Shown here: positions 6,861 through 62,713 of the stretch, in pieces
How positions within the stretch are numbered: position 1 is the first letter of the stretch
Layout: every line of letters begins with the position of its first letter
NCBI GenBank assembly: GCA_002269645.1
Contig: NIVC01000736.1
Coordinates: 1 to 64,000 of the forward strand
Direction: 5' to 3'
DNA length: 64,000 nt
Source of the DNA: Macrostomum lignano
Lineage: Eukaryota
Position numbers and translations under genes: made by a program
Notes under the pieces: model-generated
Told to the model about the DNA's origin: nothing
Database searches by the model: none
Seen by the model: the letters and a program-made list of their open reading frames with translations, nothing else

Positions 6861-6939
6861 AGGTTTTTAATCACTTAACATGGAATTAAAAAAACTCACG
6901 GTGATTAAAGATCTGTTGATGAGTCAAGTCAGTGTCTCA

Positions 6940-10424: not shown

Positions 10425-10481
10425 TTGTGATTAATCAGCTATACTGCTTGTGTACGAGCTAAATTGTGTAAAAGATTCATG

Positions 10482-12050: not shown

Positions 12051-12209
12051 CAGACACAATTTTTTTTGCTGCGCCCGAACAGAGCAACGAAGGCACACAA
12101 AACCCGAGAACATGGACTCACTTTTTGTAGCGCGACCTTCTGGAGCAAGAATCAAGTCGCCAGCCCTCCGGACCGTCGAGATAATTAAATGATTCTGCCA
12201 GAAAACCAT

Positions 12210-25335: not shown

Positions 25336-25384
<49 letters not shown>

Positions 25385-32895: not shown

Positions 32896-35800
32896 GATGG
32901 TGATGGTGATGATGATGGTGACGGTGTTGATGGTGATGGTGTTGATTATGGTGATGATGATGGTGATGATGGTGACGATGTTGATGATGGTGATGATGAT
33001 GGTGATGGTGATGATGATGGTGACGGTGTTGATGATGGTGATGATGATGGTGATGGTGATGATGATGGTGACGGTGTGATGATGATGGTGTTGATGATGA
33101 TGGTGATGATGATGGTGGTGATGATGGTGTGATGATGGTGATGATGATGGTGGTGATGATGGTGTGATGATGGTGGTGGTGACGGTGATGATGGTGGTGG
33201 TGACGGTGATGATGATGACGGTGTTGATGATGATGGTGATGATGATGGTGATGATGATGGCGTTTATGGTGATAATAATGATAGCGATGGCAGTAAATAA
33301 AACCTCAATGACATTTGGCTGTCTGTCAGATTCGACCACTCGATAAGCGAGCAGAGGGGCTGGCACACACAATTAACACTTGCAGCCCACACGGGTCCAA
33401 AATGTCAAGGCGTATCATTAACAAACTAAATTAGCGACGCAAATTGCACACAGTGAAGGTGTAGGACTACAGTGGAGGCTGGCCAAAGAAGATGAGGGGG
33501 GGGAAATACGCCAGTGTATCTCCATGTTTAGCTTATGCATGTAATTAGCCTAGAGAAATCAAACTCAATGCCTGGCTCGACAACTGTAGCCAACTTATTT
33601 AAGCTTTTGTGGCCTTCCAATTTGCTTTACACACCTGAATAGGATACACTTGGGCAGGCAGCTGCAGTGCCACAGCCACTTCCATGTATAAATTAATGAA
33701 TAAGATAACTGACTAAAGTTTATTTAGCCAATCAGAGACCCTAATTAAACAATTAGACATTGCTTAGGGTCACTTTAGCAGTCAAGTCTGTACGCAGCGC
33801 TCACTATGGCCCAGACAAATCCACAATCAGCAAAAGGTGCTGACAGATGCAGTGCCAACTCTCGGCTGCACATAACTGAGTTCAATCTCTCACAAGTGTA
33901 ACATAGTCTGTAGCTGCGGGTGGGGGCTACGACTGCCGGAAATTGTGAGGACATGATTTAATAAATTTACAATTATCTAACTAATGGCTGTGCTGTACAT
34001 TTTTTGTATCACCACGGGGTCTGGGAGAGTCTGTATAACAGCATGAGGATCTGGGAGAGTCTGTATGACAGCATGGGGATCTGGGAGAGTCTGTATAACA
34101 GCATGAGGATCTGGGAGAGTCTGTATAACAGCATGGGGATCTGGGAGAGTCTGTATAACAGCATGGGGATCTGGGAGAGTCTGTATAACAGCATGGGGGT
34201 CTGGAAGAGTCTGTATAACATGGGGATCTGGAAGAGTCTGTGTCCCAGCATGGGGATCTGGAAGTGTCTGTGTGACAGCATGGGGATCTGTGAGAGTCTG
34301 TATAACAGCATGGGGATCTGGAAGAGTCTGTGTCCCAGCATGGGGATCTGGAAGTGTCTGTGTGACAGCATGGGGATCTGAGAGTCTGTATAACAGCATG
34401 GGGATCTGGGAGAGTCTGTATAACAGCATGGGGATCTGTGAGAGTCTGTATGACAGCATGGGGATCTGGGAGAGTCTGTATAACAGCATGGGGATCTGGG
34501 AGAGTCTGTGTCCCAGCATGGGGATCTGGAAGAGTCTGTATGACAGCATGGGGATCTGTGAGAGTCTGTATGACAGCATGGGGATCTGGGAGAGTCTGTG
34601 TCCTAGCATGGGGATCTGGAAGAGTCTGTATGACAGCATGGGGATCTGGGAGAGTCTGTATAACAGCATGGGGATCTGGGAGAGTCTGTATAACAGCATG
34701 GGGATCTGTGAGAGTCTGTATGACAGCATGGGGATCTGGGAGAGTCTGTATAACAGCATGGGGATCTGGGAGAGTCTGTGTCCCAGCATGGGGATCTGGA
34801 AGAGTCTGTATGACAGCATGGGGATCTGTGAGAGTCTGTATGACAGCATGGGGATCTGGGAGAGTCTGTGTCCTAGCATGGGGATCTGGAAGAGTCTGTA
34901 TGACAGCATGGGGATCTGGGAGAGTCTGTATAACAGCATGGGGATCTGGAAGAGTCTGTGTCCCAGCATGGGGATCTGGAAGAGTCTGTATGACAGCATG
35001 GGGATCTGTGAGAGTCTGTATGACAGCATGGGGATCTGGGAGAGTCTGTGTCCTAGCATGGGGATCTGGAAGAGTCTGTATGACAGCATGGGGATCTGGG
35101 AGAGTCTGTATAACAGCATGGGGATCTGGAAGAGTCTGTATAACAGCATGGGGATCTGGGAGAGTCTGTACGCAGCGCTCACTATGGCCCAGACAAATCG
35201 GCAATCAGCAAAAGATGCTGACAGATGCAGGGCCAACTCTCGGCTGCACATAACTGAGTTCAATCTCTCACAAGTGTAACATAGTCTGTAGTTGCGGGTG
35301 GGGGCTACGACTGCCGGAAATTGTGAAGACTTTCTTTTTAGTACCAGCGTTTAAAACCCCTTACCAGCGTAGCTTGCGGAATGGCCTGCAGAGCAGGCCA
35401 TAGACTATTTTAGCATATTTTTTACACCCCCGTAGCCTGCGATAGCCGGCGGATTAGCTTATACTCGTAGCAGAAAAGGATAAACATGAAAGCAAAAAAC
35501 AAAGTGGTGTGGGGTTGATGGACGGGTGGGTGGGTATAAATGACACAGTAAAATTGTGGAATTCATCAAATCAAGAAAGCTTGAAGTTACATGATCAAAG
35601 TCAAGTGCTAATTAATTAATTGATTTATTTAATTAATTTGTTTGATTGATTAATTAATTAATTGATTGATTAGTTAATTAATTTGATCCGGATACCGACT
35701 CCGAACTACAGGAGGAGGAAGGCTGGCTAGCAGCGGACGAGGTTGAAGATGAAGAAGAGGAGGACCTGCATCTCCAGCCAAATGAAGACGCCAGAGGCTT

Positions 35801-38800
35801 GCCAAATGATGCTTGGGTGGCACGGGAAGCTGGGCAGGATCAACGGCCAGATGCAGAGCCCGAGTTCTTGGGAATGCCTGGTATGGATCCTGACTTGCCA
35901 GAGACTGCCGATGACGATCCGGCTGCGTTTTTCAAGCTGTTTCTGACTGCTGACCTGCTGCAACAGCTCTGCGCTTGGACCAATGCGCAGCGTGGCGCAA
36001 ATTCGACGAGTTACAAGCATCGATGCCAAACTTGCCTCAAAGGTTCTCTGCGTGGAAAGACGTGACCGTGGACGAGATGAAGAAGTTTGTCGCCATGTCG
36101 CTTTACATGGGAATAGTTAAAAAGCCCGAGACCGCCAACTATTGGAGCAAAGATGATTTCTACGCAGCACCTTTCTTCCAAAAACTCGCTTGCCTAACAA
36201 GGGACAGGTACCAACAGATCAGTAGCCAGCTGCGCTTCTATGACTGCAATAACTTCGATGGAAACAACTCATAAAACAGATTTATAGGTGGTGTCGACAG
36301 GCTGGAACTCTGCCTTGCAGCCATACAACCCATGCCGGCGGACTCAGAAGTGGCCCACAAAGCTCGGCGCGAACCTTTTTCTTGTACTGTCCAGAAACGG
36401 CTGGGTTGTGTACCGATCGTGTGGCGGTACACTGGAGTTTTTAAAGTTTCTGGAGACCATAAACAAGAACTTTATCGACTCCTCTGGACCAGGTCGTGTA
36501 AGAGCTGCTTGGGCACAGCAGCAGCCAGCAGTGGCTCACCAACAGCACTCGCTGAAGCGCATTGAAGCCACCGAAGCGCAAGCCCGACCAACGAAGCGGT
36601 GCAGGCAGTGCTACAAGAACGGCCAGGCCAAGAAAACCGTGTTCGGCTGCGGCTCCTGTGAAGGCAACCCTGGACTGTGCGCTGCGCAGCCCCCTGCTTT
36701 GCCGACTGGCATGCCGCTCAGGTGTAACTTAAATACTTTTTATTTTTTAAAGCCAAAGGCAGCTCATATTTAATTGACAAAGGGCCCGCCCGTTCTATAA
36801 AGCCATCGTAAGATAAAATCGTTCTTAGTTCCTATTTCCGCGGTGTAAAAGTTTCGACGTACGTAGGATCGAACTGACGCTACGACAGCTTTATAGAGAC
36901 TGCTGGCTACCCAGCAACTAAGAATCTGGAATGGGCGGATAAAGCATTTATGTTTTCATCCCTAAATTGTGAGGACCCGGCCATCAGTAAAAGTTTTTAA
37001 GCTTTTACTTTAGGACTACTTAAAGGATCTGGGAAGTTGGCTACTAGCGTGCCCAGCGACTGAGAAATGATGTGGGAGGCTGGCCCAGCAACTGACGATC
37101 TGGGAGGCTGGCCCAGCAACTGACGATCTGGGAGGCTGGCCCAGCAACTGAGGATCTGGGAGGCTGGCCAAGAAAATGAGGATCCGGGATAGGCGCAGTA
37201 TTTCTGTTTTTATACATAAAATTGAATTCTGTGCGCAGCGCTCACTATGGCCCAGACAAATCCACAATCAGCAAAAGGTGCTGACAGATGCAGGGCCAAC
37301 TCTCGGCTGCACATAACTGAGTTCAATCTCTCACAAGTGTAACATAGTCTGTAGCTGCGGGTGGGGGCTACGACTGCCGGAAATTGTGAGGACATGATTT
37401 AATAAATTTACAATTATCTAACTAATGGCTGTGCTGTACATTTTTTGTATCACCACGGGGTCTGGGAGAGTCTGTATAACAGCATGAGGATCTGGGAGAG
37501 TCTGTATGACAGCATGGGGATCTGGGAGAGTCTGTATGACAGCATGGGGATCTGGGAGAGTCTGTATAACAGCATGGGGATCTGGGAGAGTCTGTATAAC
37601 AGCATGGGGATCTGGGAGAGTCTGTATAACAGCATGGGGATCTGGGAGAGTCTGTACGCAGCGCTCACTATGGCCCAGACAAATCGGCAATCAGCAAAAG
37701 GTGCTGACAGATGCAGGGCCAACTCTCGGCTGCACATAACCGAGTTCAATCTCTCACAAGTGTAACATAGTTTGTAGCTGGAAAAGTTTCAGTGCTAAGA
37801 CTGCCGGAAGTTGTGAGGCACTTGCTGCTACTGGGTTTAGTAAAGCATTTCTCCTACAATGAATTTCATCTATATCTACCGGTATACCCAAAGTAAGTCT
37901 GTGCCAGTGGCGCCACAGCATCTGAGAGCCAAACTCACATAACCGGAAGCTGCAGGCGCAGCGGCGGCAGCGGCAGACGCAGGGGCCGTGGAGGCCACCG
38001 GTGCGCAGTAGAGGCCTTTGTAGCGCAACTCGAACGCCTGGCCGATAGTGGACACGACGTCCGAGGCCAGGCCGTCCGGACATTCGATTACGTAACAGGC
38101 CCGGCCCTGGAGAGCGTCCTTAGCTACGTAGGCAACGTAGTCCATGGTGTCGGCGTCGCCGCCGCTGGCGAAGGACACGTTAACCAGATCGTGATTGGCT
38201 ATCACCGCCTGCGTATCCATGGCAACCACGTTGATGCTCTGTGTAGTGACGGTTATATTGACGCTGCAGCCGCTGTGCTGCATGGCCGGCCGGTCGCCAA
38301 GCAGCTTGGCGATGGCCTTGTCCCGGCGCTTCTTGCCTGGCATCAGCAGCCCGGCCGACTCGCAGCACATGCAGATGGCGGCCCGCGTCACCTGGCGGAG
38401 GGAGGGGCGCTGGCGCTCAGACTGGGACAGGACAAAGACTTAACACTCGGATGGAACAGAGACCAGACCAGGATGGAACAGACTTCAGACTGGGATGGAA
38501 CAAAGACTTCAGATTGTGGTGGAACAAAGACTTCAGAATGGGATGGAACAGAGACTTCAGTTGTGGTGGAACAGACTTCAGACTGGGATGGGACAGAAAC
38601 TTCAGACTAGAATGGAACAAAGACTTCAGACTAGGATGGAACAAAGACTTCAGTTTAGGATGGAACAGAGACTTCAAATTTGAATGGAACAGAAACTTCA
38701 GACTGGAATGGAACAGACTTCAGACTGGGATGGAACAGAGACTTCAGACTGGGATGGAACGAAGACTTCAGACTGGGATGGAACGAAGACTTCAGACTGG

Positions 38801-39441
38801 GATGGAACGAAGACTTCAGACTGGGATGGAACAGAAACTTCAGGCTAGGATGGAACAGACTTCAGACTAGGATGGAACAAAGACTTCAGATTAGGATGGA
38901 ACAAAGACTTCAGATTAAGATGGAAGGAACAAAGACTTCAGATTAATATGGAAGGAACAAAGACTTCAGATTAAGATGGAAGGAACAAAGACTTCAGACT
39001 GGGATGGAACAGAAAGTTCAGACTAGGATGAAAAAGAATTTAGACTAGGCGAGACCAGAGACTCAAACGGTGACTAAATAGTGTTCGCAGCGCCAAAAAT
39101 ACTAAGAGCAACAAAGACACAATGGCCAGCTCTCGTCTGCACTAGGCAAAAAGCAACTATACAATCTCTCACAAGTTTAACATAGTCTCTAGCTAAAATC
39201 GGGTTGCTAAGACTGCCGGAAATTGTGAGGCATATCAGACAGAAAAGCTGAATCACGCATGGCTCAGCAAACTCGCCTGGTTTCGCATGTCAGTCTTGAG
39301 CGACCTGGTGCTGGCCAGCACTGGCACACTGCCAACATAGCGGACACCGTAGGTCACTCCGCAGTTGGGGGCCAGGCTGTAGTCTGGATGGACGAATCGC
39401 GGCTTCCTGCCACCACCTGTTGATGCCATTTGGCTGCTCAT
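31543..39441 (-). CDS. shc: Shc adaptor protein (PTB-CH1-SH2), about 400 aa, exons 39441-39277, 38391-37939, 32382-32271, 32015-31543
   Basis: PTB: GVTYGVRYVG, RNQ|VTRAAI, SFASGGDADTMDYVAYVAKD, RACYVIEC, VVSTIGQAFELRY. SH2: QPWYHG...GDYLVR...GQFVLSG...[29 protein letters not shown]...LPIVS. Phases are consistent; the CH1 exon 3 is less certain. Confidence 0.93.
32404..33290. repeat. (GAT/GGT)n trinucleotide array
   Basis: Directly visible; intronic in shc. Confidence 0.97.
33786..35330. repeat. Composite repeat: about 165-bp unit A, about 65-bp unit B, 30-bp minisatellite (about 38 copies), unit A
   Basis: Unit A (gcagcgctcactatggcccagacaaatc...actgccggaaattgtga) at 33786 and 35168; minisatellite unit gggatctgggagagtctgtataacagcatg. 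Confidence 0.92.
35355..36996 (+). mobile_element. piggyBac (PGBD4-like) element, internally deleted
   Basis: N-terminal PAAFFKLFLTADLLQQLCAWTN and VTVDEMKKFVAMSLYMGIVKKP...YWS...LTRDRYQQI..LRF; C-terminal Cys-rich KRCRQC...TVFGCGSC..NPGLC. DDD core absent. Flanking TTAA at 35351 and 36997; TIRs weak. Confidence 0.82.
37026..37190. repeat. 28-bp tandem repeat (ggctggcccagcaactgacgatctggga)
   Basis: About 4-5 copies; shares GATCTGGGA with the 30-bp minisatellite. Confidence 0.85.
37233..37830. repeat. Second A-B-minisatellite(about 6 copies)-A composite
   Basis: Near-identical to 33786-35330 apart from minisatellite copy number. Confidence 0.92.
38448..39050. repeat. 23-24-bp minisatellite (gactgggatggaacagagacttca)
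   Basis: Fills shc intron 1. Confidence 0.93.
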
Positions 39442-46168: not shown

Positions 46169-47508
46169 AACTCAAACTTTTTCAAATTCAGTATGCTTAA
46201 TGTCTTACTGACAGTAGTGCCATACAATCCTATGTTTTCTTGTGCAAACAGCACGTAAGGAAGATAATTAAGCGTTTGACAGCATTGCTGACCTTTGGGA
46301 TATGCTCGTATTAACGGTAACTTTGGATTAATAGTAATTACACTCGCTGCTTCTATAATCGGACCATTGCATGTAATACGCCAAATGCTTTAATTTATGC
46401 TGGCTCTCTTGACCCTCGTAGTTTTACCCTGAGGCAGTGCCAGAATCCATGCAGTGGCTTCAAAAACACTAATTTGCGTTATTTTGCATTTGCGTCCTTT
46501 GAAGTTAATTAGGCCGATCTTATTACAGATCCATCGTTGGGAGCTCACTGACCGCCCGCGGCAGTTGCTATCCATATCCATATTTAGATGCCGGAGATTT
46601 AATGATATCTAATTAAAATAAAATCGTTTGGTGACGGAAATTTTTTGAGTTTCATCCAGTCAGTACTTGGCATCCACGCAAAAATGACTCAGAGGGTCCC
46701 GGGCTCGATTTCACCGTCGCGGCAGTTGATCGGAGTGCAGCTTGTGCGATCGACTATCGCTCACCGCTACAGCCAACATGCAGAGGGAAAACTGAAAATT
46801 ACCTCCTCACCGGCTGGCGAGACAACTTCCTGAAAGACTCGTCTTTAATAAATTTATCGAGCGTGCACTCCAACCCATGCCAGGCCTCATCATGATTGCC
46901 CCATTGTGCCGCAGCGAAGCAGGCGGTCCATCAAATTCAATTCGTGCGAGAGTGGCTGCTCAATGCCGAACTACTCACTTGCCATATTTGGCCGATGCTT
47001 TGAGCTCTCAGAAGTCGAAGCAGCCTCTCTCTGGCTGTTGTCAAGCGGGGGTACTTCATCACTACTTTCGGTCGGCATTGCCCCGTCTCCACCCTCAAAA
47101 ACAGACAGTGAATGGAGGATACGATGGTTGCTAGGCCGCTTGGCAACGCGCCCCGTTAGCCTCCCCAATCGCCAGCTTCCAATCGTTGATGATGCAGGCC
47201 GTCACAGCCATGGGGTGGGTGGGTGCAAATTCTCGCCATTCTCCGCGGCTCTGTCAGTCTCCCCATCCTTTTCTCCCGCTCGTGGCTCACTCTAACAGGC
47301 CAAGGCCAAGCTCTGGTTTATTTTAACGAGTCCCTCAGGGGTTCGTCCGGCGACACGCGTTCCTGGTCGCCAGCTTTGATTTGTACTGAAGGACTAATCT
47401 CATCTGCTCTCAAGTCGGGCACTCGTCGGAGCTCTCCAGTCTCAAATCGGCGCATTGGGTTGGGGCTGTCGAGATTTGTGCGGCAAATCAGAGAGATAAA
47501 AAATAGTG

Positions 47509-48172
47509 CGAGCCGAGGGCAGATCCGGTAAACAAGCAAATCTTCAGGGCGAGCCGAGGGCAGATCCGGTAAACAAGCAAATCTTCAGGGCGATCCGAGG
47601 GCAGATCCGGTAAACAAGCAAATCTTCAGTGCGAGCCGAGGGCAGATCCGGTAAACAAGCAAATCTTCAGGGCGATCCGAGGGCAGATCCGGTAAACAAG
47701 CAAATCTTCAGGGCGAGCCGAGGGCAGATCCGGTAAACAAGCAAATCTTCAGGGCGATCCGAGGGCAGATCCGGTAAACAAGCAAATCTTCAGGGCGATC
47801 CGAGGGCAGATCCGGTAAACAAGCAAATCTTCAGGGCGAGCCGAGGGCAGATCCGGTAAACAAGCAAATCTTCAGGGCGATCCGAGGGCAGATCCGGTAA
47901 ACAAGCAAATCTTCAGGGCGAGCCGAGGGCAGATCCGGTAAACAAGCAAATCTTCAGGGCGATCCGAGGGCAGATCCGGTAAACAAGCAAATCTTCAGGG
48001 CGAGCCGAGGGCAGATCCGGTAAACAAGCAAATCTTCAGGGCGATCCGAGGGCAGATCCGGTAAACAAGCAAATCTTCAGGGCGAGCCGAGGGCAGATCC
48101 GGTAAACAAGCAAATCTTCAGGGCGAGCCGAGGGCAGATCCGGTAAACAAGCAAATCTTCAGGGCGATCCGA
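47509..48172. repeat. 41-bp tandem repeat, about 16 copies
   Basis: Unit gagggcagatccggtaaacaagcaaatcttcagggcga(g/t)cc. Confidence 0.97.
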
Positions 48173-48218
48173 GGACACTTCGAGTTGGAAGCCAAGAGTG
48201 TGTACTGCAGGCTCAAGG

Positions 48219-48340
48219 ATGTCAGCCATGCAGAGTCTCATCCGGGATGTGGTCCGAAAGCAGGCTAGCGAGGACAGCGACGACTCCGGCGAGATGATGA
48301 TGCCGGGCGCAGCCTCCGCCAGCTCCGGCCTGCTTGACGA
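48219..48340 (+). CDS. Candidate variable first exon A (MSAMQSLIRDVVRKQASEDSDDSG...SGLLDE)
   Basis: Open frame ending GAC GA|GTGAGT (phase 2); tactgcag acceptor just upstream. Confidence 0.5.
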
Positions 48341-48821
48341 GTGAGTTTATTTTTTTGCGATTGGATTTCATTCTTTCCGGTGCAAAAGTTATTCTCGAGT
48401 GCAAAAGCCCCAAAAAGGAACAATTTGTGTGCACTGCGAGTGTTTTATTAAAAATCAATTTATCGATCCACCGAGAGACTCTCTGATCTGCGGAGCTTCC
48501 CGAAAGCAGTAAAAGAAAAACGATCGACGCAGGAATCAGAAAGTCGGCGAAAAAGTGCGCGCTGAGTGTGGCGTCGGCCAGTGCGTCCAATTAAAAAAGC
48601 CGCGCTACTGCCGGCCGGTCCTGCCGCTCTCTCCGCTTGATTGCCGATCCGTTTAAACAGCTGACAGCAAAGGACTGGGGGGTCTTCCCGTTCGAGAGCT
48701 GTTGTTAATCAATCAGTCAGGCGGTCAAGAAACCGGCTGGCAGCTGAAAACAAGGGGGGGTTCTGTTTCGCCCAGCAATTATTTGAGAATTTCTAGTGGC
48801 AAGTAAGAGAACGGATACTAT

Positions 48822-49815
48822 AGGGGAGAGAAGGGTAGAGAAGGGGAGAGAAGGGTAGAGAAGGGTAGAGAAGGGGAGAGAAGGGAGAGAAGGATAGAGA
48901 AGGGAAGAGAAGGGAAGAGAAGGGTAGAGAAGGGCAGAGAAGGGAGAGAAGGGAGAGAAGGGTAGAGAACGGCAGAGAAGGGAGAGAAGGGCGAGAATGG
49001 AAGAGAAGGGTAGAGAAGGGTAGAGAAGGGGAGAGAAGGGGAGAGAAGGGAGAGAAGGGAGAGGAGGGAAGAGAAGGGAGAGAAGGGAGAGAAGGATAGA
49101 GAAGGGGAGAGAAGGGGAGAGAAGGGAGAGGAGGGAAGAGAAGGGAGAGAAGGGAGAGAAGGATAGAGAAGGGGAGAGAAGGGAGAGAAGGGAGAGAAGG
49201 GGAGAGAAGGGGAGAGAAGGGAGAGAAGGGAAGAGAAGGGTAGAGAAGGGGAGAGAAGGGGAGAGAAGGGAGAGAAGGGTAGAGAAGGGTAGAGAAGGGG
49301 AGAGAAGGGGAGAGAAGGAAGAGAAGGGAGAGAAGGATAGAGAAGGGGAGAGAAGGGGAGAGAAGGGGAGAGAAGGGAGAGAAGGGAGAGAAGGATAGAG
49401 AAGGGGAGAGAAGGGGAGAGAAGGGAGAGGAGGGAGAGAAGGAGAGAGAAGGGGAGAGAAGGGAGAGAAGGGGAGAGAAGGGGAGAGAAGGGAGAGAAGG
49501 GAGAGAAGGGGAGAGAAGGGAGAGAAGGGAGAGAAGGGTAGAGAACGGCAGAGAAGGGAGAGAAGGGCGAGAATGGAAGAGAAGGGTAGAGAAGGGTAGA
49601 GAAGGGGAGAGAAGGGGAGAGAAGGGAGAGGAGGGAAGAGAAGGGAGAGAAGGGAGAGAAGGATAGAGAAGGGGAGAGAAGGGGAGAGAAGGGAGAGGAG
49701 GGAAGAGAAGGGAGAGAAGGGAGAGAAGGATAGAGAAGGGGAGAGAAGGGAGAGAAGGGAGAGAAGGGGAGAGAAGGGGAGAGAAGGCAGAGAAGGGAGA
49801 GAAGGAGAGAAGAGG
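48822..49815. repeat. Polypurine (GAGAAGG)n-like array
   Basis: About 1 kb almost exclusively A/G on the plus strand. Confidence 0.97.
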
Positions 49816-50383
49816 AGTCGGTCTAGAGTAGTGATCAGATGATAGACAGGCTGACAGATACGGCAAGTCCCTGGCGCCGAGCCAGCCGCTCGCTGAAATT
49901 TTATGGATTAAGGATTCAAGCCTCCCCAAACTGATGGGATTGACCCGCCTTGGTGACAGCAGCTGCGGCAAACTTCTAAAATTCAGTTCTGAGGCCGCAG
50001 AGGTCCGTGGGGTCTCCGGCCCTAAAAACGGCCTGAGACATGCAGCAAGTGCGTCACGCAAGCTGTGGCTTCTGGTGGCTCAGCAAACTGAATTATGAAT
50101 TGTTTTTTTGGCTGAGTGATCCCCTACCTGAGCCCGCACTGATCCTCCGGGACTGGGAGATTTCTGCGCCTCGTTGGAGCAGCACTTTTGGGAGCTGGAA
50201 TTACAAAATCGTGCTCATCCCAGTTTCTCTGTCTGCTTACTTTTTTAATGGAAAAATTCTCTGCTCCTAATAAAGTCCTTCGTACGCTCACAAGCTGACT
50301 CTATCCATCTGACACTATATCTATCTGACACTACATGTATATCCATCTGACACTATATCCACCTGACACTATATTAACCTGAC

Positions 50384-51821
50384 ACTCAGGATTCGGGACT
50401 CAGGATTCGGGACTCAGGATTCGGGACTCAGGATTCGGGACTCAGGATTCGGGACTCAGGATTCGGGACTCAGGATTCGGGACTCAGGATTCGGGACTCA
50501 GGATTCGGGACTCAGGATTCGGGACTCAGGATTCGGGACTCAGGATTCGGGACTCAGGATTCGGGACTCAGGATTCGGGACTCAGGATTCGGGACTCAGG
50601 ATTCGGGACTCAGGATTCGGGACTCAGGATTCGGGACTCAGGATTCGGGACTCAGGATTCGGGACTCAGGATTCGGGACTCAGGATTCGGGACTCAGGAT
50701 TCGGGACTCAGGATTCGGGACTCAGGATTCGGGACTCAGGATTCGGGACTCAGGATTCGGGACTCAGGATTCGGGACTCAGGATTCGGGACTCAGGATTC
50801 GGGACTCAGGATTCGGGACTCAGGATTCGGGACTCAGGATTCGGGACTCAGGATTCGGGACTCAGGATTCGGGACTCAGGATTCGGGACTCAGGATTCGG
50901 GACTCAGGATTCGGGACTCAGGATTCGGGACTCAGGATTCGGGACTCAGGATTCGGGACTCAGGATTCGGGACTCAGGATTCGGGACTCAGGATTCGGGA
51001 CTCAGGATTCGGGACTCAGGATTCGGGACTCAGGATTCGGGACTCAGGATTCGGGACTCAGGATTCGGGACTCAGGATTCGGGACTCAGGATTCGGGACT
51101 CAGGATTCGGGACTCAGGATTCGGGACTCAGGATTCGGGACTCAGGATTCGGGACTCAGGATTCGGGACTCAGGATTCGGGACTCAGGATTCGGGACTCA
51201 GGATTCGGGACTCAGGATTCGGGACTCAGGATTCGGGACTCAGGATTCGGGACTCAGGATTCGGGACTCAGGATTCGGGACTCAGGATTCGGGACTCAGG
51301 ATTCGGGACTCAGGATTCGGGACTCAGGATTCGGGACTCAGGATTCGGGACTCAGGATTCGGGACTCAGGATTCGGGACTCAGGATTCGGGACTCAGGAT
51401 TCGGGACTCAGGATTCGGGACTCAGGATTCGGGACTCAGGATTCGGGACTCAGGATTCGGGACTCAGGATTCGGGACTCAGGATTCGGGACTCAGGATTC
51501 GGGACTCAGGATTCGGGACTCAGGATTCGGGACTCAGGATTCGGGACTCAGGATTCGGGACTCAGGATTCGGGACTCAGGATTCGGGACTCAGGATTCGG
51601 GACTCAGGATTCGGGACTCAGGATTCGGGACTCAGGATTCGGGACTCAGGATTCGGGACTCAGGATTCGGGACTCAGGATTCGGGACTCAGGATTCGGGA
51701 CTCAGGATTCGGGACTCAGGATTCGGGACTCAGGATTCGGGACTCAGGATTCGGGACTCAGGATTCGGGACTCAGGATTCGGGACTCAGGATTCGGGACT
51801 CAGGATTCGGGACTCAGGATT
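50384..51821. repeat. 14-bp satellite ACTCAGGATTCGGG, about 102 copies
   Basis: No variant unit seen by eye. Confidence 0.98.
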
Positions 51822-52294
51822 TGAGACTAGCTTGTACTATAGACAGAAATGTCAACTCAATCGTCACGAGAAGTGCAGCTCCCCCCGGTTTATGCCGTGT
51901 TCACCCCGCCAGCTCTCGGCACTGACAGGCGGCCCTAAAAGAAAACTCCTCCAGCGGGGATCACCCAGCTGATTGATGGCTACACATCAGAAAAATCGCA
52001 TCCCAAGCCGAATCGAATGCAAACAGCTCGAAATGCACTCTAAGCGGGGGCGCTGAGGCCCGCGGTGAGATGCAGAGCTGGAATATTGAGCCCTAGGTGA
52101 GCACTGCGGGGTGAAATGAGATCGGCTTTCATTCCCCGCAGCGGCGATGTGATAATAAAACATCAGGAATGGGGGCTGATGAGGCAGGACGGGAGCGTGA
52201 TGAGGAAGGGAAATGAACCGGCTGCTGAATGAAGTGAAATTGCTTTTTCTTGCTCTGCTGTTACTCTGAGTTCTTATTAGATACTAATAATGAG

Positions 52295-52822
52295 CGAGTG
52301 TCAGGTAGGCTCTGCAGTGAGTGTCAGGTAGGCTCTGCAGCGAGTGTCAGGTAGGCTCTGCAGCGAGTGTCAGGTAGGCTCTGCAGCGAGTGTCAGGTAG
52401 GCTTTGCAGTGAGTGTCAGGTAGGCTCTGCAGTGAGTGTCAGGTAGGCTCTGCAGTGAGTGTCAGGTAGGCTCTGCAGTGAGTGTCAGGTAGGCTTTGCA
52501 GCGAGTGTCAGGTAGGCTCTGCAGTGAGTGTCAGGTAGGCTCTGCAGTGAGTGTCAGGTAGGCTCTGCAGTGAGTGTCAGGTAGGCTCTCTGCAGTGAGT
52601 GTCAGGTAGGCTCTGCAGCGAGTGTCAGGTAGGCTCTGCAGTTAGTGTCAGGTAGGCTCTGCAGTGAGTGTCAGGTAGGCTCTGCAGTGAGTGTCAGGTA
52701 GGTTCTCTGCAGTGAGTGTCAGGTAGGCTCTGAAGTGAGTGTCAGGTAGGCTCTGCAGTGAGTGTCAGGTAGGCTCTGAAGTGAGTGTCAGGTAGGCTCT
52801 GCAGTGAGTGTCAGGTAGGCTC
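52295..52822. repeat. 23-bp minisatellite (gagtgtcaggtaggctctgcagt)
   Basis: Directly visible. Confidence 0.96.
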
Positions 52823-53649
52823 TATAAAACTGACTGGTGAGCTGAGCTGCTCAAAACGAGAGTTATCGGTGCGGACGGGCTGCTTGAGCTGTTACTGCAG
52901 CCTGGGTGAATGCCAGGCCTTTGGCGGCAAGTTTGCTGCCTGCGCTGCCCTCTCGCTCTGTCACCCTCCCGGTGACTGATGTCGGCGGCTTCATCTGCTG
53001 GACGCAGCCAGCCGCACGTGGAAGCGGAAGTCAACAGAAAAAAAATGTCAGGACGGAAGTTTGTCGGCCGCTCTGAGCGCTCCGCATCTGACAAGTTTTT
53101 TTCTATCACTGGCTTGGGAAGCTGCGGTGGGAGGAAAAAGGCCGCGCCTCATCGTTCTTTGAGTTCAAGCGTGACCTAATTCGCCCATTGTGTGAGCCGG
53201 GCCCGGCCCCGGGAGGGCTTTGAGCTGCTCAAGGCAACGCTTTTCCGTGCTCAAAGATCCGCTGCCAAGGCGACTTGAGCAGGACAGCGGGTTTTTTTAT
53301 AGCAACCGCGCTTTGTTAGATCGGGCTGGGTGGAGATTGATGATGATGGCACTGGCAGTGCCGCCAGCCTAAACTTTGCCGAGAGAAAGCGGTGTAAACT
53401 GATGAGCTCGAGTCTGCAACATACTACTGATAATAGTAGCAATGCACGATTGTAAGTTTGTGTTAACTGTTGAGCTGCAATGATTCAATATCTGTTGGGA
53501 AGAAGTCATGGGATCAGGCTGATGGGATCAGGCGCCATTGGGTCAAGAGGTTCTTTGGGACAGGATAGCAATTCAGCCCTCGATTAGGTCAGAAAGTTTA
53601 GCTTAGCTTAGTCCGGGTTCGTCAGTTTACCGGTAGATCATGCTCGTCA

Positions 53650-54000
53650 GTTTAGGTTCAGTCCGGTCAGTTTAGGTCAGGCGCGTCAGTTTATGTCCGG
53701 CGTGTCAGTTTAGGTCAGACGGGTCAGTTTAGGTCAGATGGGTCAGTTTAGGTCAGATGGGTCAGTTTAGGTCAGACGGGTCAGTTTAGGTCAGACGGGT
53801 CAGTTTAGGTCAGACGGGTCAGTTTAGGTCAGATGGGTCAGTTTAGGTCAGACGGGTCAGTTTAGGTCAGACGGGTCAGTTTAGGTCAGACGGGTCAGTT
53901 TAGGTCAGATGGGTCAGTTTAGGTCAGACGGGTCAGTTTAGGTCAGACGGGTCAGTTTAGGTCAGACGGGTCAGTTTAGGTCAGGCGGGTCAGTTTAGGT
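53650..54000. repeat. 19-bp minisatellite (gtcagtttaggtcagacgg)
   Basis: Directly visible. Confidence 0.95.
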
Positions 54001-54742
54001 CCACCAGGGCCCTCGGTGGCGGATCAGTGAGGCCTTTCAGCAGAAACAGGATAGGGGAAGTGATTGGCGATATTATCCGGCACAAATCCTCATCAGGGGA
54101 GCTGGTCTCGCGCATTACTCACCGTGATTACACGCATTTCCTACAGTAGAAAATCCGCCTTACCGGCGAGTTTTAGCACGGAGGCCTCCGCGCGGCCCGC
54201 CCCCGAGGCTCCGAGAACATTTCATTTCTCGCTGGAGTGCCTCAAAAACAGCCGGGCGGGTCCCGCAGTTCGAGCCACTCAAAGAGACCGGCAAGGAGGG
54301 GCAGGGGGCTTCTCTTCTCATTTTCCCTTACTTATTTCCCTGGCTCCGACTTCCCACAACTCCTTTTGCCGGGAGTTTAGAGAGAGGGGGTGGGGCGCCG
54401 AAACTCGAATCCGACTGATTGCCTCGGCGAGAATTCCCACGGGCTGAGTTCGAGTAATAAGCTGCTATCATAATGAGCTGCTATCATGCCCTCCGCTGTT
54501 ATTGTATCCGCGAGCCGCAGAAACTCGCAGTTCTTGACAACAGGCGCGGCGGAGATTCGAGACTTATCGAGCTCCCAGCTTCTGAGAAGGAGAACAGAGA
54601 GGCCAGGGCGGGGGGGGGTCAAGCCGCGGGAAACCGGGACTTCGCGGCTCGATTATCAATTCCCAAGCCGGCTGAAGTTTGAAGGCTGGTTGCTTCAATA
54701 TTTATGCCCCGGGCTTGCGGACAGATGAGCACGGGACAGCAG

Positions 54743-54744
<2 letters not shown>

Positions 54745-54813
<69 letters not shown>
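54745..54813. repeat. (TC)n microsatellite
   Basis: Lies about 130 bp upstream of candidate exon B. Confidence 0.97.
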
Positions 54814-54821
<8 letters not shown>

Positions 54822-54942
54822 CACACGGCTGGGACAGTTGGCCAATGGGAATCTCCGGGTGGGCGAGGCCCGGGTTGTCAATAAAAAGCCTTGAAGCTCT
54901 GCGTCAACCGAAGGGCTGGGAAGACCGCACTCGAGCAGCTCC

Positions 54943-55214
54943 ATGGCCAAGCTCCTGGCAGCCAAGCATCTGCTCAGAGGCGGCAGCTGCGGCGGCAGCG
55001 GCGATTGGTCAACGGAATGCGAATGGGCCATCCAGGCCGCGGCGGCTGCAACCGGAGGCGGGGCGGCCGGCGGTCTCGGCGGCAGGCAGGCGAGCACCGA
55101 CAGCGGCCAGTCCTCGGTGGGTGGCGGCTCCGGCCTCGGCGGCACCAGCCGGGAGCGGACCGAGTCTGTGGACTCCGGGCGGAGCCACTCGCGCGAGAAA
55201 GCGCTGCTGGACGA
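54943..55214 (+). CDS. Candidate variable first exon B (MAKLLAAKHLL...RQASTDSG...KALLDE)
   Basis: GC-rich ORF with an upstream in-frame stop, ending GAC GA|GTGAGA (phase 2). Confidence 0.6.
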
Positions 55215-55809
55215 GTGAGAAGGGCCGCTGGGAATGGAGGGGCGCTGAGGGGCGTTGAGTAGCTCAGATTTAAAAAATCCTCGGAACTCGTCATCGACGG
55301 TGACCTGAAGTATAGAGTCGAGTTTACTTTTAAAGCCACGAGAACATTCGGCATCAGGGAAGGTCATGGAAGGTCAGGAGCGGCTTGTTGTTGATAAGTG
55401 GGAAACTACGAATAACTGACGGAGTGACAGACTCAGATATTAAGCAACTGGACCACAAAAAGCAGAAGACTCGTCCTTTTATCGTAATTTTCTGCCTGCC
55501 TCTTCATTTCCCATTTATTGCTGGCAGCCAGGCAGGCCGTGGGAGAAAATTCCTCAATTCCCTCAACTTCCTCATCGCCCGTCTGTCTGCCTCTAAGCGT
55601 ATTTTGCTGAATGCAAAAATTACTGGGAATTCAAGTGACTTTCCTCAGCCGGGGTCGGGTGCCGGAATTTCCCCTGGCAACGACGAAATATTAATATTTG
55701 TGCAGATGCAGTTATCGGCAAGATATGGGAGGGGGGATCGTTGTTGCTGCTGCTGCCTCGGTTAGGGGACAAGTGGAGCCGCTCCTGCTTGGGGAGTTTT
55801 AGGCAACGG

Positions 55810-56010
55810 GGCTTCAGGGAATTTTCTTCAGGGACCGCACCGACCCTTCAGGGACCGCCCGATCTTTCAGGGACAACCCGATCCTTCAGGGACAACCCAA
55901 TCCTTCAAGGACCGCCCAATACTTCAGGGACCACCCAATACTCCAGTGACCGCCCAATCCTTCAGGGACCGCCTGATCCTTCAGGGATCACCCAATCCTT
56001 CAGGGACCAC
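55810..56010. repeat. Imperfect repeat (ccttcagggaccgcccgatc core)
   Basis: Several degenerate copies. Confidence 0.8.
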
Positions 56011-56759
56011 CCTGAACTCCACCCTGACCTCCCCAATTCTTCAGAAGCTGTCCCGATCCTTCCGGGAGCCATCAAATCTCATTATAGCTCGCGGGCTGCC
56101 ACAGCCGCTTGTAATCTCACTCAAGGCGTGAGAAAGCAGCCAGCGCTCCCACACGCCGCCCCCATCGATCTTGGGAAATCCGACACCCATCGCCGCTCGG
56201 TTTTCCTGAAAAATTCTTACGAAAAAGTTGCAAACTTCGCTGCCACCTAATTCAGCTCTTCCTTCTAAAAGCAAATTCTTGTGACCGTGCTGTGATCTGG
56301 CAATTCGATCTGGTTTAGGAAATAATGAGAACCTATGAGAACTTTCTTTCACTGGGGGAGCCGCGGAGTCCGTGAAAGTCTCTGCCCCGTCCATCCCCTC
56401 TCGCCCCATCTCCCCAGCTCAAGCCGCGTTGCAACGGACCGCTGATTCGAGCTGAGAGGCCCTCCAGCCACTCCATTGTGAAGCCAAGCTTGACCCCCCC
56501 CCGAGCCTCCGTTCTCCGGGTGGCTCTTCCGGGTTGGGAAGCTGGGCCTCATCTCCCACCAAATCATCTCCTTTTCTGTTCCTGCAGCCCAAGGGGCCCT
56601 CTGTCCCGCTCAATTCATTTGCTGCAGTGCACGGCATCCCGCCGGAGTCAATCAGACCAGCGGCTAATCAGATACAATAATTGCCCCCGGACCGCCGCCT
56701 CCGCACCGCCCTGTCTCTCCGTGCTCTGCGCACCTCTGCATCTCTCACGTACTTAATTC

Positions 56760-57170
56760 CCATCTTCCCAGCTCCTCTTCTTACCATCCCCCATCTCCCT
56801 ATTCTCTCATCTCCCCATCTTCCCATCTCCCTTTCTCCCCATCTTCCCATCTGCCATCTTCCCATATTCCCATCTCCCCATATTCCCAATTCCCATCTCC
56901 CCATCTTCCCATCTCCCCATATCCCCATATTCCCATATTCCCATCTCCCCATATTCCCATCTCCCTATCTCCTCATCCCCCCATATCCCCATATTCCCAT
57001 ATTCCCATCTCCCCATATTCCCATCTCCCCATCTCCTCATCCACCCATATCCCCATATTCCCATATTCCCATCTCCCCATATTCCCATCTCCCCATCTCC
57101 TCATCCCCCCATATCCCCATATTCCCATATTCCCATCTCCCCATCTCCCCATCTCCCTATCTCCCCATAG
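56760..57170. repeat. CCCATATT/CCCATCTC low-complexity array
   Basis: Directly visible. Confidence 0.93.
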
Positions 57171-58209
57171 CTCCTGCATGCTCTGGCCTGCCTCACCAGG
57201 CTCACCTACCTCTTAATTAAGTCTGACTCCCTTGGAATGCAGCTGTCCATGAGTTCAAATTGTAACTCAAAAATCACGCGACTCAGCCTCAATTAAGAGG
57301 GCAGCACTTGTCTCAAGCATGACGCGTTGCCCCGACTTGAAAAGAAGTTCATCTTTTACTTTCTTCTTCTCCTTCTTGAAGAGCTCATCGCGGTTGCGCA
57401 TCACCTGTCCGCCTGTTCAATGAGGACTTCAGCTTAGGCAGGAATTCCTGCTCAAGTCTTTTTGTGTGCGCGTAGGCGGTGCAGAATCCGGAGAGAAGTT
57501 TATTACGAGATTTAATCCCCAGCTATTTTGCTCGGAAAGCTCGGACATCTTAATTAATCTCCAGAATAATTTCGCATCGACTGGTTTCTCATAATATAGA
57601 AACCGCTATTCATTAGCGTTATGCCTATTTCACAGTCTACTTCACTAATAAATCCTACAGTTGAAATGCTCTACTGCCTACTACTAGTAAGTAAGATGGA
57701 AATTCAAGTGTATTGGCAGCAATTTGCACTTGATTCATGTCTGCTGCTGAGATCTGTCGCAAAAAATGGCGGGAGCTGTTGTCGGGCATCCATCACTGAC
57801 TACAATGCGGCCGCTCCATCATTCTGAATATGGAAGGTGTCACGCTCTGACTGGCTGCCCCATCCCCAAACACTGATGGCTCAGCATTTATGGAATGAAT
57901 AACTCGCGTGCGAGCGGGGCGGAGGCTGCCAGATGTACAATCATTGGTCATCGGCGCCTCCGAGAGCCCCGGCCTGGCTCAAATCTCGCACAAACTCCTC
58001 ACGGCCTGTGCTCCAAGCATCATTCCCAGCCAAGATGGGACAAAAATCCCCATCTCCCTTCCCCCGGGTTTCCCTTCCTCTGCCGAACCCCCCCTCGCCT
58101 CCGGCACGCGTATAACAAACAGCGGTTCTCCCAGAAATCCTTGCCATTTATTCGCCCTCCATCTGCGGTCTCCTCGTCTGAGTCCCCCAACCCCCGGCTC
58201 GCGTCTAAC

Positions 58210-58412
58210 ATGCCGACCTGCAAGAGCCGCATCAGCAAGTCTGCCTCGAACCACAGCCTCTCCGCCAGCAGCTGCGGCTCCCTCAGCGACAGCGGCAGCT
58301 TTTTCGAGGACGTATCAGCGTCGCTGTGGAGCCTCTATCTGGACTACGCGGCCAGCGGTGACTCGGCCGAGCGAGAGGCCGAGGCGGCGGCCGCTGACAG
58401 CCGCAGTAGAAA
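58210..58412 (+). CDS. Candidate variable first exon C (MPTCKSRISKSASNHSLS...DSRSR)
   Basis: GC-rich Ser-rich ORF ending AGA AA|GTGAGA (phase 2). Confidence 0.55.
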
Positions 58413-58724
58413 GTGAGACGCAGACTCGAGCCGCTTAGTGAGGGCTGGCGGCGGCCTCGGGCCTCCTGGCAGTTTCGACTCATCCTGGTGTATTTTATAG
58501 GGGTCAAGCGTACTTAACGCCCTTCAAGTTTCAAGTTCGCGTCAAGTTCGTACTATCGTGACTTCAGTTAATGGGTCATAAACTAAAGTTCAAGTTCGAG
58601 CGCAGAGATACTCCCAGGCAGTGTAGCAACTTTTGGCGTACAGGTTCTTGCGCCATTCTCTGGGCTCTCCCTTGTCGTTTGGGCGCCACTTCTTGCACCA
58701 CTTTCGTCACCATGTCTGTCGGTA

Positions 58725-58895
58725 CCGCCATATCTACCAGCCATATCTACCAGCCATATCTACCGCCATATCTACCGCCATATCTACCGCCATATCTACC
58801 GCCATATCTACCGCCATATCTACTGCTATCTATCGCCATACCTACCGCCATATCTACCGCCATACCTACCAATATATCTACCGCCATATCTACCG
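58725..58895. repeat. 12-bp repeat (ccgccatatcta)
   Basis: Directly visible. Confidence 0.93.
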
Positions 58896-59487
58896 CCGCT
58901 TTCACTTCCTGACTCATTAATTTTTAGCACTTATGGGTAAGAGATTAGCGAAAATTGGCTTTTTTTTAAATTTAAGTTCAAACTTCAGGTGCTGCTGCTG
59001 CTGCTGATATTTAAGTCAGAAAAATAGATCTCCCATTTCCCAATCATCATTATCTCCCAACTCCCTGAAGCCTAATTATATTAGCTGGTTATTAATTTAT
59101 TTTCCGGATATCCCCAAAGAACAGCACGCAGTCACTAACAGGCAATAATAGGCGATTGCTAAAGAGTCCGGAGGACGGGCTGCCTCTTCACAAATTCTTC
59201 TTAAATGATGATTTTTTGCCTTTCACGCCAGAGCTCAGCTGAGAACTGCAAAGCCCCCCCCGTGGACTGCTTCAGTGGGCAGAGAGGGTTCTGCTCGCCC
59301 GGTTGGACAGCTAATCAGCTGGGAATAACCGGCGCCTGGCAACTCACAGAATACCTATTCCGCTTCCATGGGGATTAAGGGCTGGGAGGATTAGCTCAAC
59401 AGCCGCATGCGATAGGTGAGCCCCCGTGGCCTAAGGCAGATAAGACAACTTGGTGCTGGGATTCGCGGCAATTTTTATCGATCCATT

Positions 59488-60128
<641 letters not shown>

Positions 60129-60377
60129 AGTCAGCAATAAAAAGATTTGGAAAAAATAGAGCATTTGCAATACATACTACTGTTTAACCAACCACAAACA
60201 AATAAGTAGGGCATCGTGTTTTTAAAGTCTATACTTCATATAAGTTTTACCTCAGCAGTCATCAGCAGGCCGTTTATCTGAATTAAAATTTGAGCTTTCT
60301 TGTGAGGAAGGCAGTGAGGGAAGAACTGATGGACTACTTAACCACTTTCTAGACGCTACTTTAGTCATCCTTGAAGT

Positions 60378-60632
60378 GGTGAGGCAGGCAGTGAGGCAGG
60401 CAATGAGGCAGGCAGTGAGGCAGGCAGTGAGGCAGGCAGTGAGGCAGGCAGACAGTGAGGCAGGCAGTGAGGCAGGCAATGAGGCAGGCAGTGAGGCAGG
60501 CAGTGAGGCAGGCAGTGAGGCAGGCAGGCAGTGAGACAGGCAGTGAGGCAGACAGTGAGGCAGTCAGTGAGGCAGGCAGTGAGGCAGGCAGTGAGGCAGG
60601 CAGTGAGGCAGGCAGTGAGGCAGTCAGTGAGG
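60378..60632. repeat. 12-bp repeat (gaggcaggcagt)
   Basis: Directly visible. Confidence 0.95.
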
Positions 60633-61013
60633 TAGACAGCGAAGTATTTAGTGAGGGCATGGTACAGCTTGGGGCTGGGGTAGTTCAGCCCTCATAAATG
60701 TCCTAAACTAGCATTTTGCTACAAACAGCCAGCCAATCCCAACAGTGAAACAGGGACAGTCATGTCAGCCCCGTCACATTCCATTTCCCACGCATCGCTC
60801 TGGCATCCCTTGAAAGGCCTCCGTGGCTTCCCAGAGGGCCGCAGGAATGTGCGGAATTTCCGGCGCGCCTGGTCCAATCCCACAAAGCCAGACAGGAGCC
60901 CAATCCCGGACCGCCTCAGCCCCATTCCCGGCGCTGCAATGGGGAAAATATCCCGAGAAGTGGCAGGCCGGCAAGACTGTTGAGCCGGCAGAAGTCCCGC
61001 GGATCCCAACAAG

Positions 61014-61282
61014 ATGGACAAGCAGCATCTCCACGGCTCGGACAAGAACGCGCCGCCGTCTCCCAGCCGATTTCGGACGCGTCGAAATGCCGCCGTCTTC
61101 CTGGTGGAGACGGACCAGGATCAGGAGGAGGCCGAGGCAGCCGCCGCGGCGGTCACTGCTGCCGAGAGCATTGCCGACTCGGCCGAAAATGCCGCTGCCA
61201 CGCCAGGTGATCCGCCAAGTGGACGATCGACAAGCGGCAGCGGTGGTGGTGGCCGTCGGCTTTCTAGGCGGGGCCGTAACGG
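61014..61282 (+). CDS. Candidate variable first exon D (MDKQHLHG...RTRRNAAVFLVE...RRLSRRGRN)
   Basis: GC-rich ORF ending AAC GG|GTGAGC (phase 2). Confidence 0.6.
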
Positions 61283-62558
61283 GTGAGCTCAAAGAGCCCT
61301 CGACGCAGGCATCTCAGTTTGGCCTGGCGAGCTTGGTCAGTTAGTTTGAGTGAGGGCTGTGAGTGCTGCCAGCCAGCAAGGAGGCAATAATTGGGCAGCC
61401 AGGCCTATTCCGCAGCGTACGCGTTTTTTCATTGTCAACACAATGTACATTCTCAGCGCCCTGGGGTCTGGTTCACCCTCAATACAGCGTTCTGTGTTGA
61501 ACCCCAAATTCTAGTAAATCATTCCCTACCCTCCGCCATTCCCCCATCGATTGAATCAATGTGCGTTCTACGCAAGCCCAGCGAAGCGAGACAGTGCGAG
61601 GCGGGTACAAAGCACGAAAGCCCTCACTGACACCCACCCCCGCCTAGGCCGCGGCGCACCAAGCCCCGAGACAAGTGCGCGCCGGGACCCACCTTAAACA
61701 CAGTGGGCGGTGGAAAGCACCCCGGAACCCAAATTAAATCGCCCCACCCTCTGCCATTCAACCCATCAACTGAATCAATGTGCATTCGCAATGTACATGT
61801 ACAACCGCCCTCCTCCCTAGGCCGTCCACCTCACTCCTTTATCGATCCATTATCGATCCAGTTTGCGCCGCTACAACCACCGCAGCTACTGATGAATAAA
61901 TGGAGACTAGAGAGATTGCAATTTACTCAGCTGGCAATAAATCATAGATCATGGAGCCGGTCTGGCTGAGCTCAATATCGATAGAGAAACACGGGCGGCG
62001 CGCGGACTTCGTGGGATAGCGATAAGTCCGATCTCAGTCAGAGAGGACGGCCGCCGCCGCATAAAACTCGGAGCCGCGCAGCCAGCCCCAGCCGTGAGAC
62101 GGAGGGGACACAAAAGAGGCTGAGGCCAAACTCGATTGAATGTCCGGGCCCACGCGGATAGGCATTTGGAAAGTCCTCTCCCAAGAAGGAATTTTATCGG
62201 AAATTTGCGCTAGAATTCCCTTCATTCTAGGAGTTTCCATCGCTCAAAGTCCATTTCTCTTCCCGCTCGGCTCCGATGCTGAGCTGCCGCTGTCCCTGGG
62301 TAAGAGGAAGGCTGGGCGTCATTAATTAAAAGAGGGAGCCGAGGCTCACGGCCGCTTTGAATCAGTTCTGTCATTCAGGGCACGTGGCAGCGACAGGGCC
62401 GAGTTCCCATGGCCGAGCAGAGCCAGGGTCAGCCCGGATCATCGGTCAAGTCTTGAACCCGATCGGTGGCTCGGAGCTTGGATCTCGAATAACCGTCAGT
62501 ACAGCAGCTTGAAGCATTAACCCCCGGATTGCTTAATCGACATTTGTTTATAACAAAA

Positions 62559-62713
62559 ATGGGACGCAGTAAAACAAAACTCCACCGCCACGGGACCGAA
62601 TATTTGGACTTTTGCGCGACGATTGGAGTTGGGAGGCAGCCGGTCCTGCCGGTGTCCTCCTCGCGCACTTGCTTGCGGCGGTGCGGTTCGGATAAACAAA
62701 CTCGCTTGGCGGC
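62559..62713 (+). CDS. Candidate variable first exon E (MGRSKTKLHRHGTEYLDFCATIG...QTRLA)
   Basis: aaaaATGG start; ends GCG GC|GTGAGA (phase 2). Confidence 0.4.

Follow-up and report, generated by a model that had tools for sequence, protein, structure and literature searches.

Does the right-hand part of a contig from Macrostomum lignano hold a set of interchangeable first exons that belong to one gene, or only a scatter of open reading frames (ORFs) that arose by chance in GC-rich DNA? The question was raised by a first-pass annotation of a 64,000-nucleotide stretch of minisatellite-rich animal DNA (GenBank assembly GCA_002269645.1, contig NIVC01000736.1, positions 1 to 64,000 of the forward strand; hereafter "the window"), in which five short ATG-initiated ORFs, here termed islands A to E, were proposed to be candidate first exons, each ending in a GTGAG splice donor after the second base of a codon (i.e., in phase 2). 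Our analysis supports the view that islands A, B and C behave as real ATG-initiated coding exons of the plus strand, with the anatomy expected of alternative first exons. With a confidence only slightly better than even, we read these three, perhaps together with D, as alternative ATG-bearing first coding exons of one plus-strand gene. This gene would be divergent to Shc, with its start about 9 kilobases (kb) away, and would run past the end of the window. The islands are as follows:

Island A, 48219 to 48340 (122 nt), plus strand: candidate first coding exon, encoding MSAMQSLIRDVVRKQASEDSDDSGEMMMPGAASASSGLLD(E); phase 2.
Donor of island A, 48341 to 48346, plus strand: cga/GTGAGT, followed by a T-rich stretch.
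Island B, 54943 to 55214 (272 nt), plus strand: candidate first coding exon, rich in Gly, Ala and Ser, ending ...REKALLD(E); phase 2, with donor GTGAGA at 55215.
Island C, 58210 to 58412 (203 nt), plus strand: candidate first coding exon, encoding MPTCKSRISKSASNHSLSASSCGSLSDSGSFFEDVSASLWSLYLDYAASGDSAEREAEAAAADSRSR(K); phase 2, with donor GTGAGA at 58413.
Island D, 61014 to 61282 (269 nt), plus strand: possible first coding exon, ambiguous; donor GTGAGC.
Island E, 62559 to 62713, plus strand: ATG-initiated ORF ending in GTGAGA; unsupported as an exon.

The layout claimed for these islands held in every detail: each of the five opens with an ATG, has a length of 2 modulo 3 (phase 2) and is directly followed by GTGAG, and all coordinates were correct. 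Read from A to E, the donors are GTGAGT, GTGAGA, GTGAGA, GTGAGC and GTGAGA, and the GC content of the islands ranges from 0.59 to 0.73. Taken alone, an ORF that runs into GTGAG is weak evidence and does not exceed chance, because the window contains 15 ATG-initiated ORFs of at least 40 residues that end in G/TGA/G (nine on the plus strand and six on the minus strand), and because the DNA in which B, C and D lie is GC-rich and poor in stops, with several frames open on both strands. The caveat entered in the first-pass annotation itself, that a phase-2 GTGAG donor always creates a TGA, was thus justified.

Evidence independent of this pattern came from a codon log-odds model, in which codons from homology-confirmed exons of the G-alpha, Shc and DEG/ENaC genes of the window were set against the non-repeat background of 39.5-64 kb. 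The confirmed exons have a G+C content of 0.70-0.90 at third codon positions (GC3) and of about 0.4 at second positions (GC2); they score 0.31-0.94 bits per codon, and the small ones among them reach z values of 3.2-7.6 against dinucleotide shuffles. Islands A, B and C fall within both ranges, with +0.60, +0.43 and +0.54 bits per codon and shuffle z values of 3.9, 4.4 and 5.2, and a score restricted to synonymous choices, for which the 99th percentile of the null is 0.15, gives +0.35, +0.41 and +0.48, respectively. The values for D are +0.16 bits per codon (z 2.2, p = 0.015; synonymous-only +0.10) and those for E are −0.13 (z 0.9, p = 0.18; synonymous-only −0.15, within the null). The signal in A, B and C is confined to one plus-strand frame, the remaining plus-strand frames all being negative at −0.04 to −0.56 (−0.40 and −0.56 in A, −0.12 and −0.04 in B). 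By codon position, the GC content of A is 0.62/0.47/0.82; B keeps a GC3 of 0.86, versus 0.49 at the first two positions, after its Gly and Ala codons are removed; and C is the only non-repeat match of a GC3-periodicity scan in 39-64 kb. Among the remaining GTGAG-ended ATG ORFs of the window, scores run from −0.43 to +0.07, with a single exception that lies antisense to a real exon. A coding signal beyond chance is present in A, B and C, marginal in D and absent from E, such that the proposal of candidate first exons is well supported for the first three by their frame-specific codon and GC3 signal, ambiguous for D, and at background for E.

The same islands stand out in a scan for maximal coding-like segments that is blind to ATGs, splice signals and phase, and that covered 24 kb of plus-strand non-repeat DNA (about 39.4-64 kb). 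Its four top plus-strand segments all fall in A, B, C and D (48225-48341, 25.6 bits; 54925-55215, 43.4 bits; 58207-58404, 39.8 bits; and 61089-61202, 21.8 bits), and the fifth-ranked (61008-61058, 12.4 bits) likewise lies inside D, with A, B and C supplying the three strongest coding-like segments of the 24 kb. Segment starts lie 0-18 nt from the island ATGs, and all four coding-like segments sit in ORFs with a phase-2 GTGAG end, though the scan takes no account of phase. Island C is instructive here: its ORF opens at 57877, has its first ATG at 57895 and remains open for 333 nt (111 codons) upstream of the ATG at 58210, and yet the segment opens one codon ahead of 58210. The choice of this internal ATG in the first-pass annotation was therefore correct, as the coding signal begins there and not at 57895.

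The two remaining islands are of lesser quality. In D, the signal stops about 80 nt before the GTGAGC donor (the last 29 codons having a GC3 of 0.3-0.56), the sole GT sites near 61200 would yield phase 1, and frame −2 of the minus strand scores +0.18 versus +0.16 in the plus-strand frame. Island E is overlapped by no plus-strand maximal coding segment in the scan of about 39.4-64 kb and is most likely a chance ORF. Its start (62559-62594, plus strand; MGRSKTKLHRHG) fits the N-myristoylation pattern MGxxxS/T with basic residues after it, much like an SH4 domain; because the ORF is without a coding signature, this match is probably a coincidence.

The donors fit the local consensus, in that the homology-placed introns of G-alpha and Shc use GTGAGT, GTGAGC or GTGGGT, and two of those introns are in phase 2. 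On the upstream side, no AG before any island combines a pyrimidine-rich tract with a phase able to take a phase-2 donor, and those AGs that occur in compatible phases have pyrimidine fractions of 0.35-0.6, a range for which only a handful of known acceptors offers a comparison. In-frame sequence 5′ of every island ATG scores negative (−0.36 over the 24 codons upstream of A), and in-frame stops occur 10-24 codons before the ATGs of A, B and D. Poor upstream acceptors and negative upstream scores together argue against internal or serially spliced exons. Within the window, no further plus-strand coding segment lies between the islands or after D, and the exons common to all transcripts are for this reason placed beyond 64 kb.

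Under the arrangement that we favor, each island would be transcribed from its own start site, with separate promoters and mutually exclusive use, and would start translation at its own ATG. Because each donor follows the second base of a codon (all five islands sharing phase 2), any island could join the same downstream acceptor in frame, and the resulting proteins would have a common body preceded by a differing short N-terminus of 41-91 residues. The ends of A and B bear on the existence of such an acceptor. The first-pass annotation had regarded these two islands as paralogous, a view that we do not uphold: their local alignment scores 27 versus a shuffle mean of 25.4 (p = 0.34), blastn detected no similarity at the DNA level, either between islands or between their flanking sequences, and the only nominally significant pairwise local alignment, between B and C, consists of Ser/Gly low complexity. 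Both A and B do end in LLDE, their last 14 nt agreeing at 13 positions, and the chance that any pair of the five shares its last four residues is about 5e-4 (as computed post hoc). The likeliest explanation is a short motif that would span the junction into a common next exon, and the shared end thereby lends modest support to a common acceptor. In CLC-3/4/5-type exchangers, an N-terminal "...LLDE" stands just before a conserved block; a match of four residues is too little to name a gene and was given no weight. A similar caution applies to the kinase sites proposed earlier: RKQAS, RQAS and RRLS do occur, but the inference drawn from them carries no statistical weight, basic-x-x-Ser strings being compositionally expected in Ser/Arg-rich peptides and too short to count as evidence.

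How firmly can the islands be tied to a single gene? Several observations weigh against doing so. None of the searches yielded a usable homologue. Upstream of the islands (500 nt), no core-promoter motif was found in any case (Inr, TATA or DRE enrichment), in a scan that proved uninformative; reasoning from CpG islands was dropped as well, because the observed/expected ratio of CpG is about 0.8-1.1 throughout the unique DNA of 46-64 kb, which is thus barely CpG-depleted, and CpG islands are uninformative in such DNA. The constant exons and the shared acceptor would fall outside the window. The training set of the codon model was small (1165 codons from three genes), B is partly composed of GGC-like triplets, D and E are below the standard of A, B and C, and the ATG of A lies only 45 nt past a satellite. 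Finally, A and B each have an open antisense partner frame with a positive score (+0.35 and +0.33, respectively), so that the strand call for these two islands rests on their ATG and donor signals.

These points lend themselves to other explanations, of which the least improbable, though we still consider it doubtful, is that the exons are real and not interchangeable first exons of one gene, but instead belong to different transcripts or genes, are spliced serially, or represent small ORFs with a true TGA stop. The destinations of the donors are not visible in the window, the motif scan offers no promoter evidence, and in D the signal gives out close to weak phase-1 GT sites, short of the phase-2 donor, all of which would suit such an arrangement. 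However, separate genes would need to be completed by other plus-strand segments between or after the islands, where there are none; in addition, in-frame stops lie 10-24 codons ahead of A, B and D, and good acceptors are wanting. As for true stops, these would have no need of a flanking G, and yet all four TGAs have one on either side, which base composition would produce in roughly 7% of cases each (a rough estimate). Somewhat less probable again, and in our judgment unlikely, is that all five islands are chance ORFs in a GC-rich, stop-poor spacer and that their GTGAG ends are an artefact of ascertainment. The abundance of such ORFs in the window, the openness of B, C and D in several frames on both strands, the background or near-background scores of D and E, and the want of a homologue in the collections searched are what this explanation would predict. 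It fails to account for A, B and C, whose frame-specific GC3 and codon signals equal those of confirmed exons and which hold the top plus-strand segments in 24 kb, with signal starting at the ATG, whereas background GTGAG-ended ORFs are without such signal.

Very unlikely, by comparison, is the assignment of the coding-like signal to minus-strand exons that overlap the islands. The open and positive-scoring antisense frames of A and B would permit it, and neither third-position nor synonymous-only signals can tell the two strands apart. Against this stand the two stops in the antisense frame of C, the higher plus-strand scores in A, B and C, and the exact bounding of the signal on the plus strand by an ATG at one side and a consensus donor at the other, and it is on these that the plus-strand assignment rests; in addition, on the minus strand there is no AG beside the signal start in A, and 39.5-64 kb holds no minus-strand coding segments beyond these antisense partners. 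We thus retain alternative first exons of one plus-strand gene as our reading of A, B, C and perhaps D.

Searches with the encoded peptides did not disclose which gene this might be. No island peptide matched Pfam at E ≤ 10 or had a meaningful match in the PDB, and neither database returned a PDE-related match to any island. The five peptides, concatenated and searched against a collection of 5.8 billion protein clusters, gave nothing at E ≤ 10, although low-complexity words had probably filled the list of 8000 candidates; when A was searched by itself, it shared three 5-residue words with no candidate in that collection, from which the proteins of this animal are absent. When C was compared exhaustively with 1.84 billion representatives by HMMER, two matches emerged (E = 1e-5 and 2e-4), both of which we rejected as homologues because the proteins are internally repetitive and owe their scores to many weak repeats.

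The first-pass annotation had likened the array to the PDE4, UGT1 and protocadherin loci, and this comparison survives in part. In genes of the PDE4 type, a separate promoter for every isoform precedes the exons that encode its unique N-terminus (PMC5342582). The islands resemble such exons in being short, mutually dissimilar N-terminal coding exons arranged in tandem on the same strand, all of which carry an ATG and a donor and presumably join a common body. Members of the PDE4 family have UCR1/UCR2 modules and a PDEase catalytic domain downstream of the unique N-termini; for the present gene, no phosphodiesterase or other domain is visible, as its common exons would fall outside the window, and nothing links it to the PDE4 family. 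Variable first exons of a second kind occur in the protocadherin alpha and gamma, UGT1 and GCNT2 clusters, where they have evolved by duplication (birth-and-death), are thus paralogous, and are joined to constant exons (PMC1885805). Here the likeness is one of topology only (tandem same-strand ATG-bearing first exons, a donor without an acceptor, and presumed constant exons), whereas the island exons measure 122-272 nt, have no significant similarity to one another, and match nothing in Pfam or the PDB. In clusters of the protocadherin/UGT1 type, a variable exon is large, at about 0.9-2.4 kb, and codes for an entire functional domain. The proposed layout would work like that of PDE4-type multi-promoter genes, and the protocadherin/UGT1 model fails on exon size, paralogy and domain content. 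When the islands are compared with chance ORFs in GC-rich DNA, E and perhaps D are alike in being ATG...TGA ORFs of stop-poor DNA with background codon scores, whereas A, B and C differ in their exon-like codon usage.

The proposed layout is that of an ordinary multi-promoter gene, a familiar architecture and not a new kind of system. If the reading is true, a gene beside Shc would use at least three promoters and give rise to as many N-terminal variants of its protein, which would be mainly of value for annotation; the use of alternative first exons to diversify targeting and regulation is widespread and well understood, and would not surprise a specialist. Ab initio gene finders could miss exons of this kind because they are short and low in complexity. 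As a by-product of method, frame-specific GC3 and codon usage alone cleanly split real short exons from chance GTGAG-ended ORFs in this DNA.

The islands had also been described as separated by satellites. Tandem arrays, which we located with Tandem Repeats Finder, do lie between them and make up about 35% of 48.2-62.7 kb; however, satellites are equally frequent elsewhere in the window, including the introns of neighbouring genes, and their presence between islands is for that reason a property of the genome and not of the locus. The arrays around the islands are:

47508 to 48174: 41-bp minisatellite of 16 copies, ending 45 nt before the ATG of A.
48822 to 54001, spacer between A and B: arrays at 48822-49817, 50298-51821, 52296-52823 and 53646-54001.
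55826 to 57168, spacer between B and C: arrays at 55826-56012 and 56759-57168.
58723 to 60632, spacer between C and D: arrays at 58723-58897, 59488-60128 and 60379-60632.

Given that the 41-bp array ends so close to the ATG of A, any promoter or transcription start of this island must fall in or beside it. The spacer between A and B (48822-54001) contains no plus-strand coding-like segment above 10.2 bits in the maximal-segment scan. The array at 60379-60632 is built of GTGAGGCAGGCA units and generates a spurious GTGAG-ended ORF at 60403, and the end of the window (64000) itself falls inside a satellite. Two of the arrays are free of variants: that at 50384-51821 consists of 102.7 copies of a 14-bp unit, ACTCAGGATTCGGG, that are 100% identical, and that at 59488-60128 is (TCTA)160, also 100% identical. 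Arrays without variants are unusual at such length and point to very recent expansion, to homogenisation or to an effect of assembly. A more ambitious view of the locus would make it an invertebrate gene with at least four unrelated N-terminal exons that are boxed by long, near-perfect minisatellites and selected by promoter choice, with the satellites serving as boundary or choice elements; the locus would then parallel the variable-exon clusters of vertebrates, though with exons that are not paralogous, but we regard this as highly improbable.

The neighbouring genes, which supplied the confirmed exons used above, were placed by homology:

G-alpha gene, minus strand: exons at about 25392-25466, 22400-22480, 17674-17946, 17380-17521, 16964-17245 and 15554-15667.
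DEG/ENaC channel gene (Pfam ASC), 18340 to 20196, plus strand.
Shc gene, minus strand: SH2 exon at 31558-31860, and PTB exons at 38017-38394 and 39271-39396.
First coding exon of Shc, 39271 to 39441, minus strand: in-frame translation reads MSSQMASTGGGRKPRFVHPDY..., with a likely start codon near 39441.

The first coding exon of Shc (39271-39441, minus strand) forms the left boundary of the intergenic region that precedes island A. This exon was located by tblastn with a human SHC1 sequence. In the PDB, the PTB exon of the gene finds entry 1SHC (E = 2e-35); it is only about 51% identical to human SHC1, and the best matches to it in the protein collection are 55% identical fragments from metagenome and Logan contigs of other small eukaryotes. 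The modest identity to human SHC1 and the slight CpG depletion of the unique DNA point to an animal of invertebrate grade. The first PTB exon apparently ends in CAG/GCGAGT (39265-39270, minus strand), a candidate GC-AG intron, because only this site keeps the frame into the next exon (…ccgcag/GTGACG at 38394). A CKS gene, which lies head-to-head with SHC1 and SHC3 in human, was searched for and is not present in the window. Within Shc, the same 30-bp minisatellite occurs twice (34016-35170 and 37457-37656), flanking the remnant of a piggyBac-like transposase at 35975-36274 (Pfam DDE_Tnp_1_7).

The G-alpha gene (15554-25466, minus strand) is Gs/Golf-like but divergent: in tblastn it is about 37% identical across 186 aligned columns, which include an intron, and more so in the switch region; judged by these alignments, it may represent a lineage-specific Gs-related class. 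The DEG/ENaC gene, which comprises one 1.4-kb exon and a second exon with the second transmembrane segment (TM2), is nested on the opposite strand within a G-alpha intron, between exons 22400-22480 and 17674-17946 (minus strand). A scan of the window with Rfam gave as its sole match a borderline transfer RNA (tRNA) at 15974-16043 on the minus strand (RF00005, 30.1 bits versus a gathering score of 29), which lies just downstream of the last G-alpha exon and could be a tRNA-derived repeat. Farther to the left, fragments of retrotransposons of the long terminal repeat type occupy parts of 2235-14000, among them a reverse transcriptase (Pfam RVT_1) at 2235-3002 (plus strand) and integrase cores at 7336-7674 and 12936-13364 (minus strand). 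Several of these fragments contain GC3-periodic ORFs, such that the coding-signature scan also detects transposon genes. In the intergenic region between G-alpha and Shc, a 3.5-kb array at 26909-30410 comprises 146 copies of a 24-bp unit and, because its period is a multiple of 3, mimics a long coding-like ORF in composition scans.

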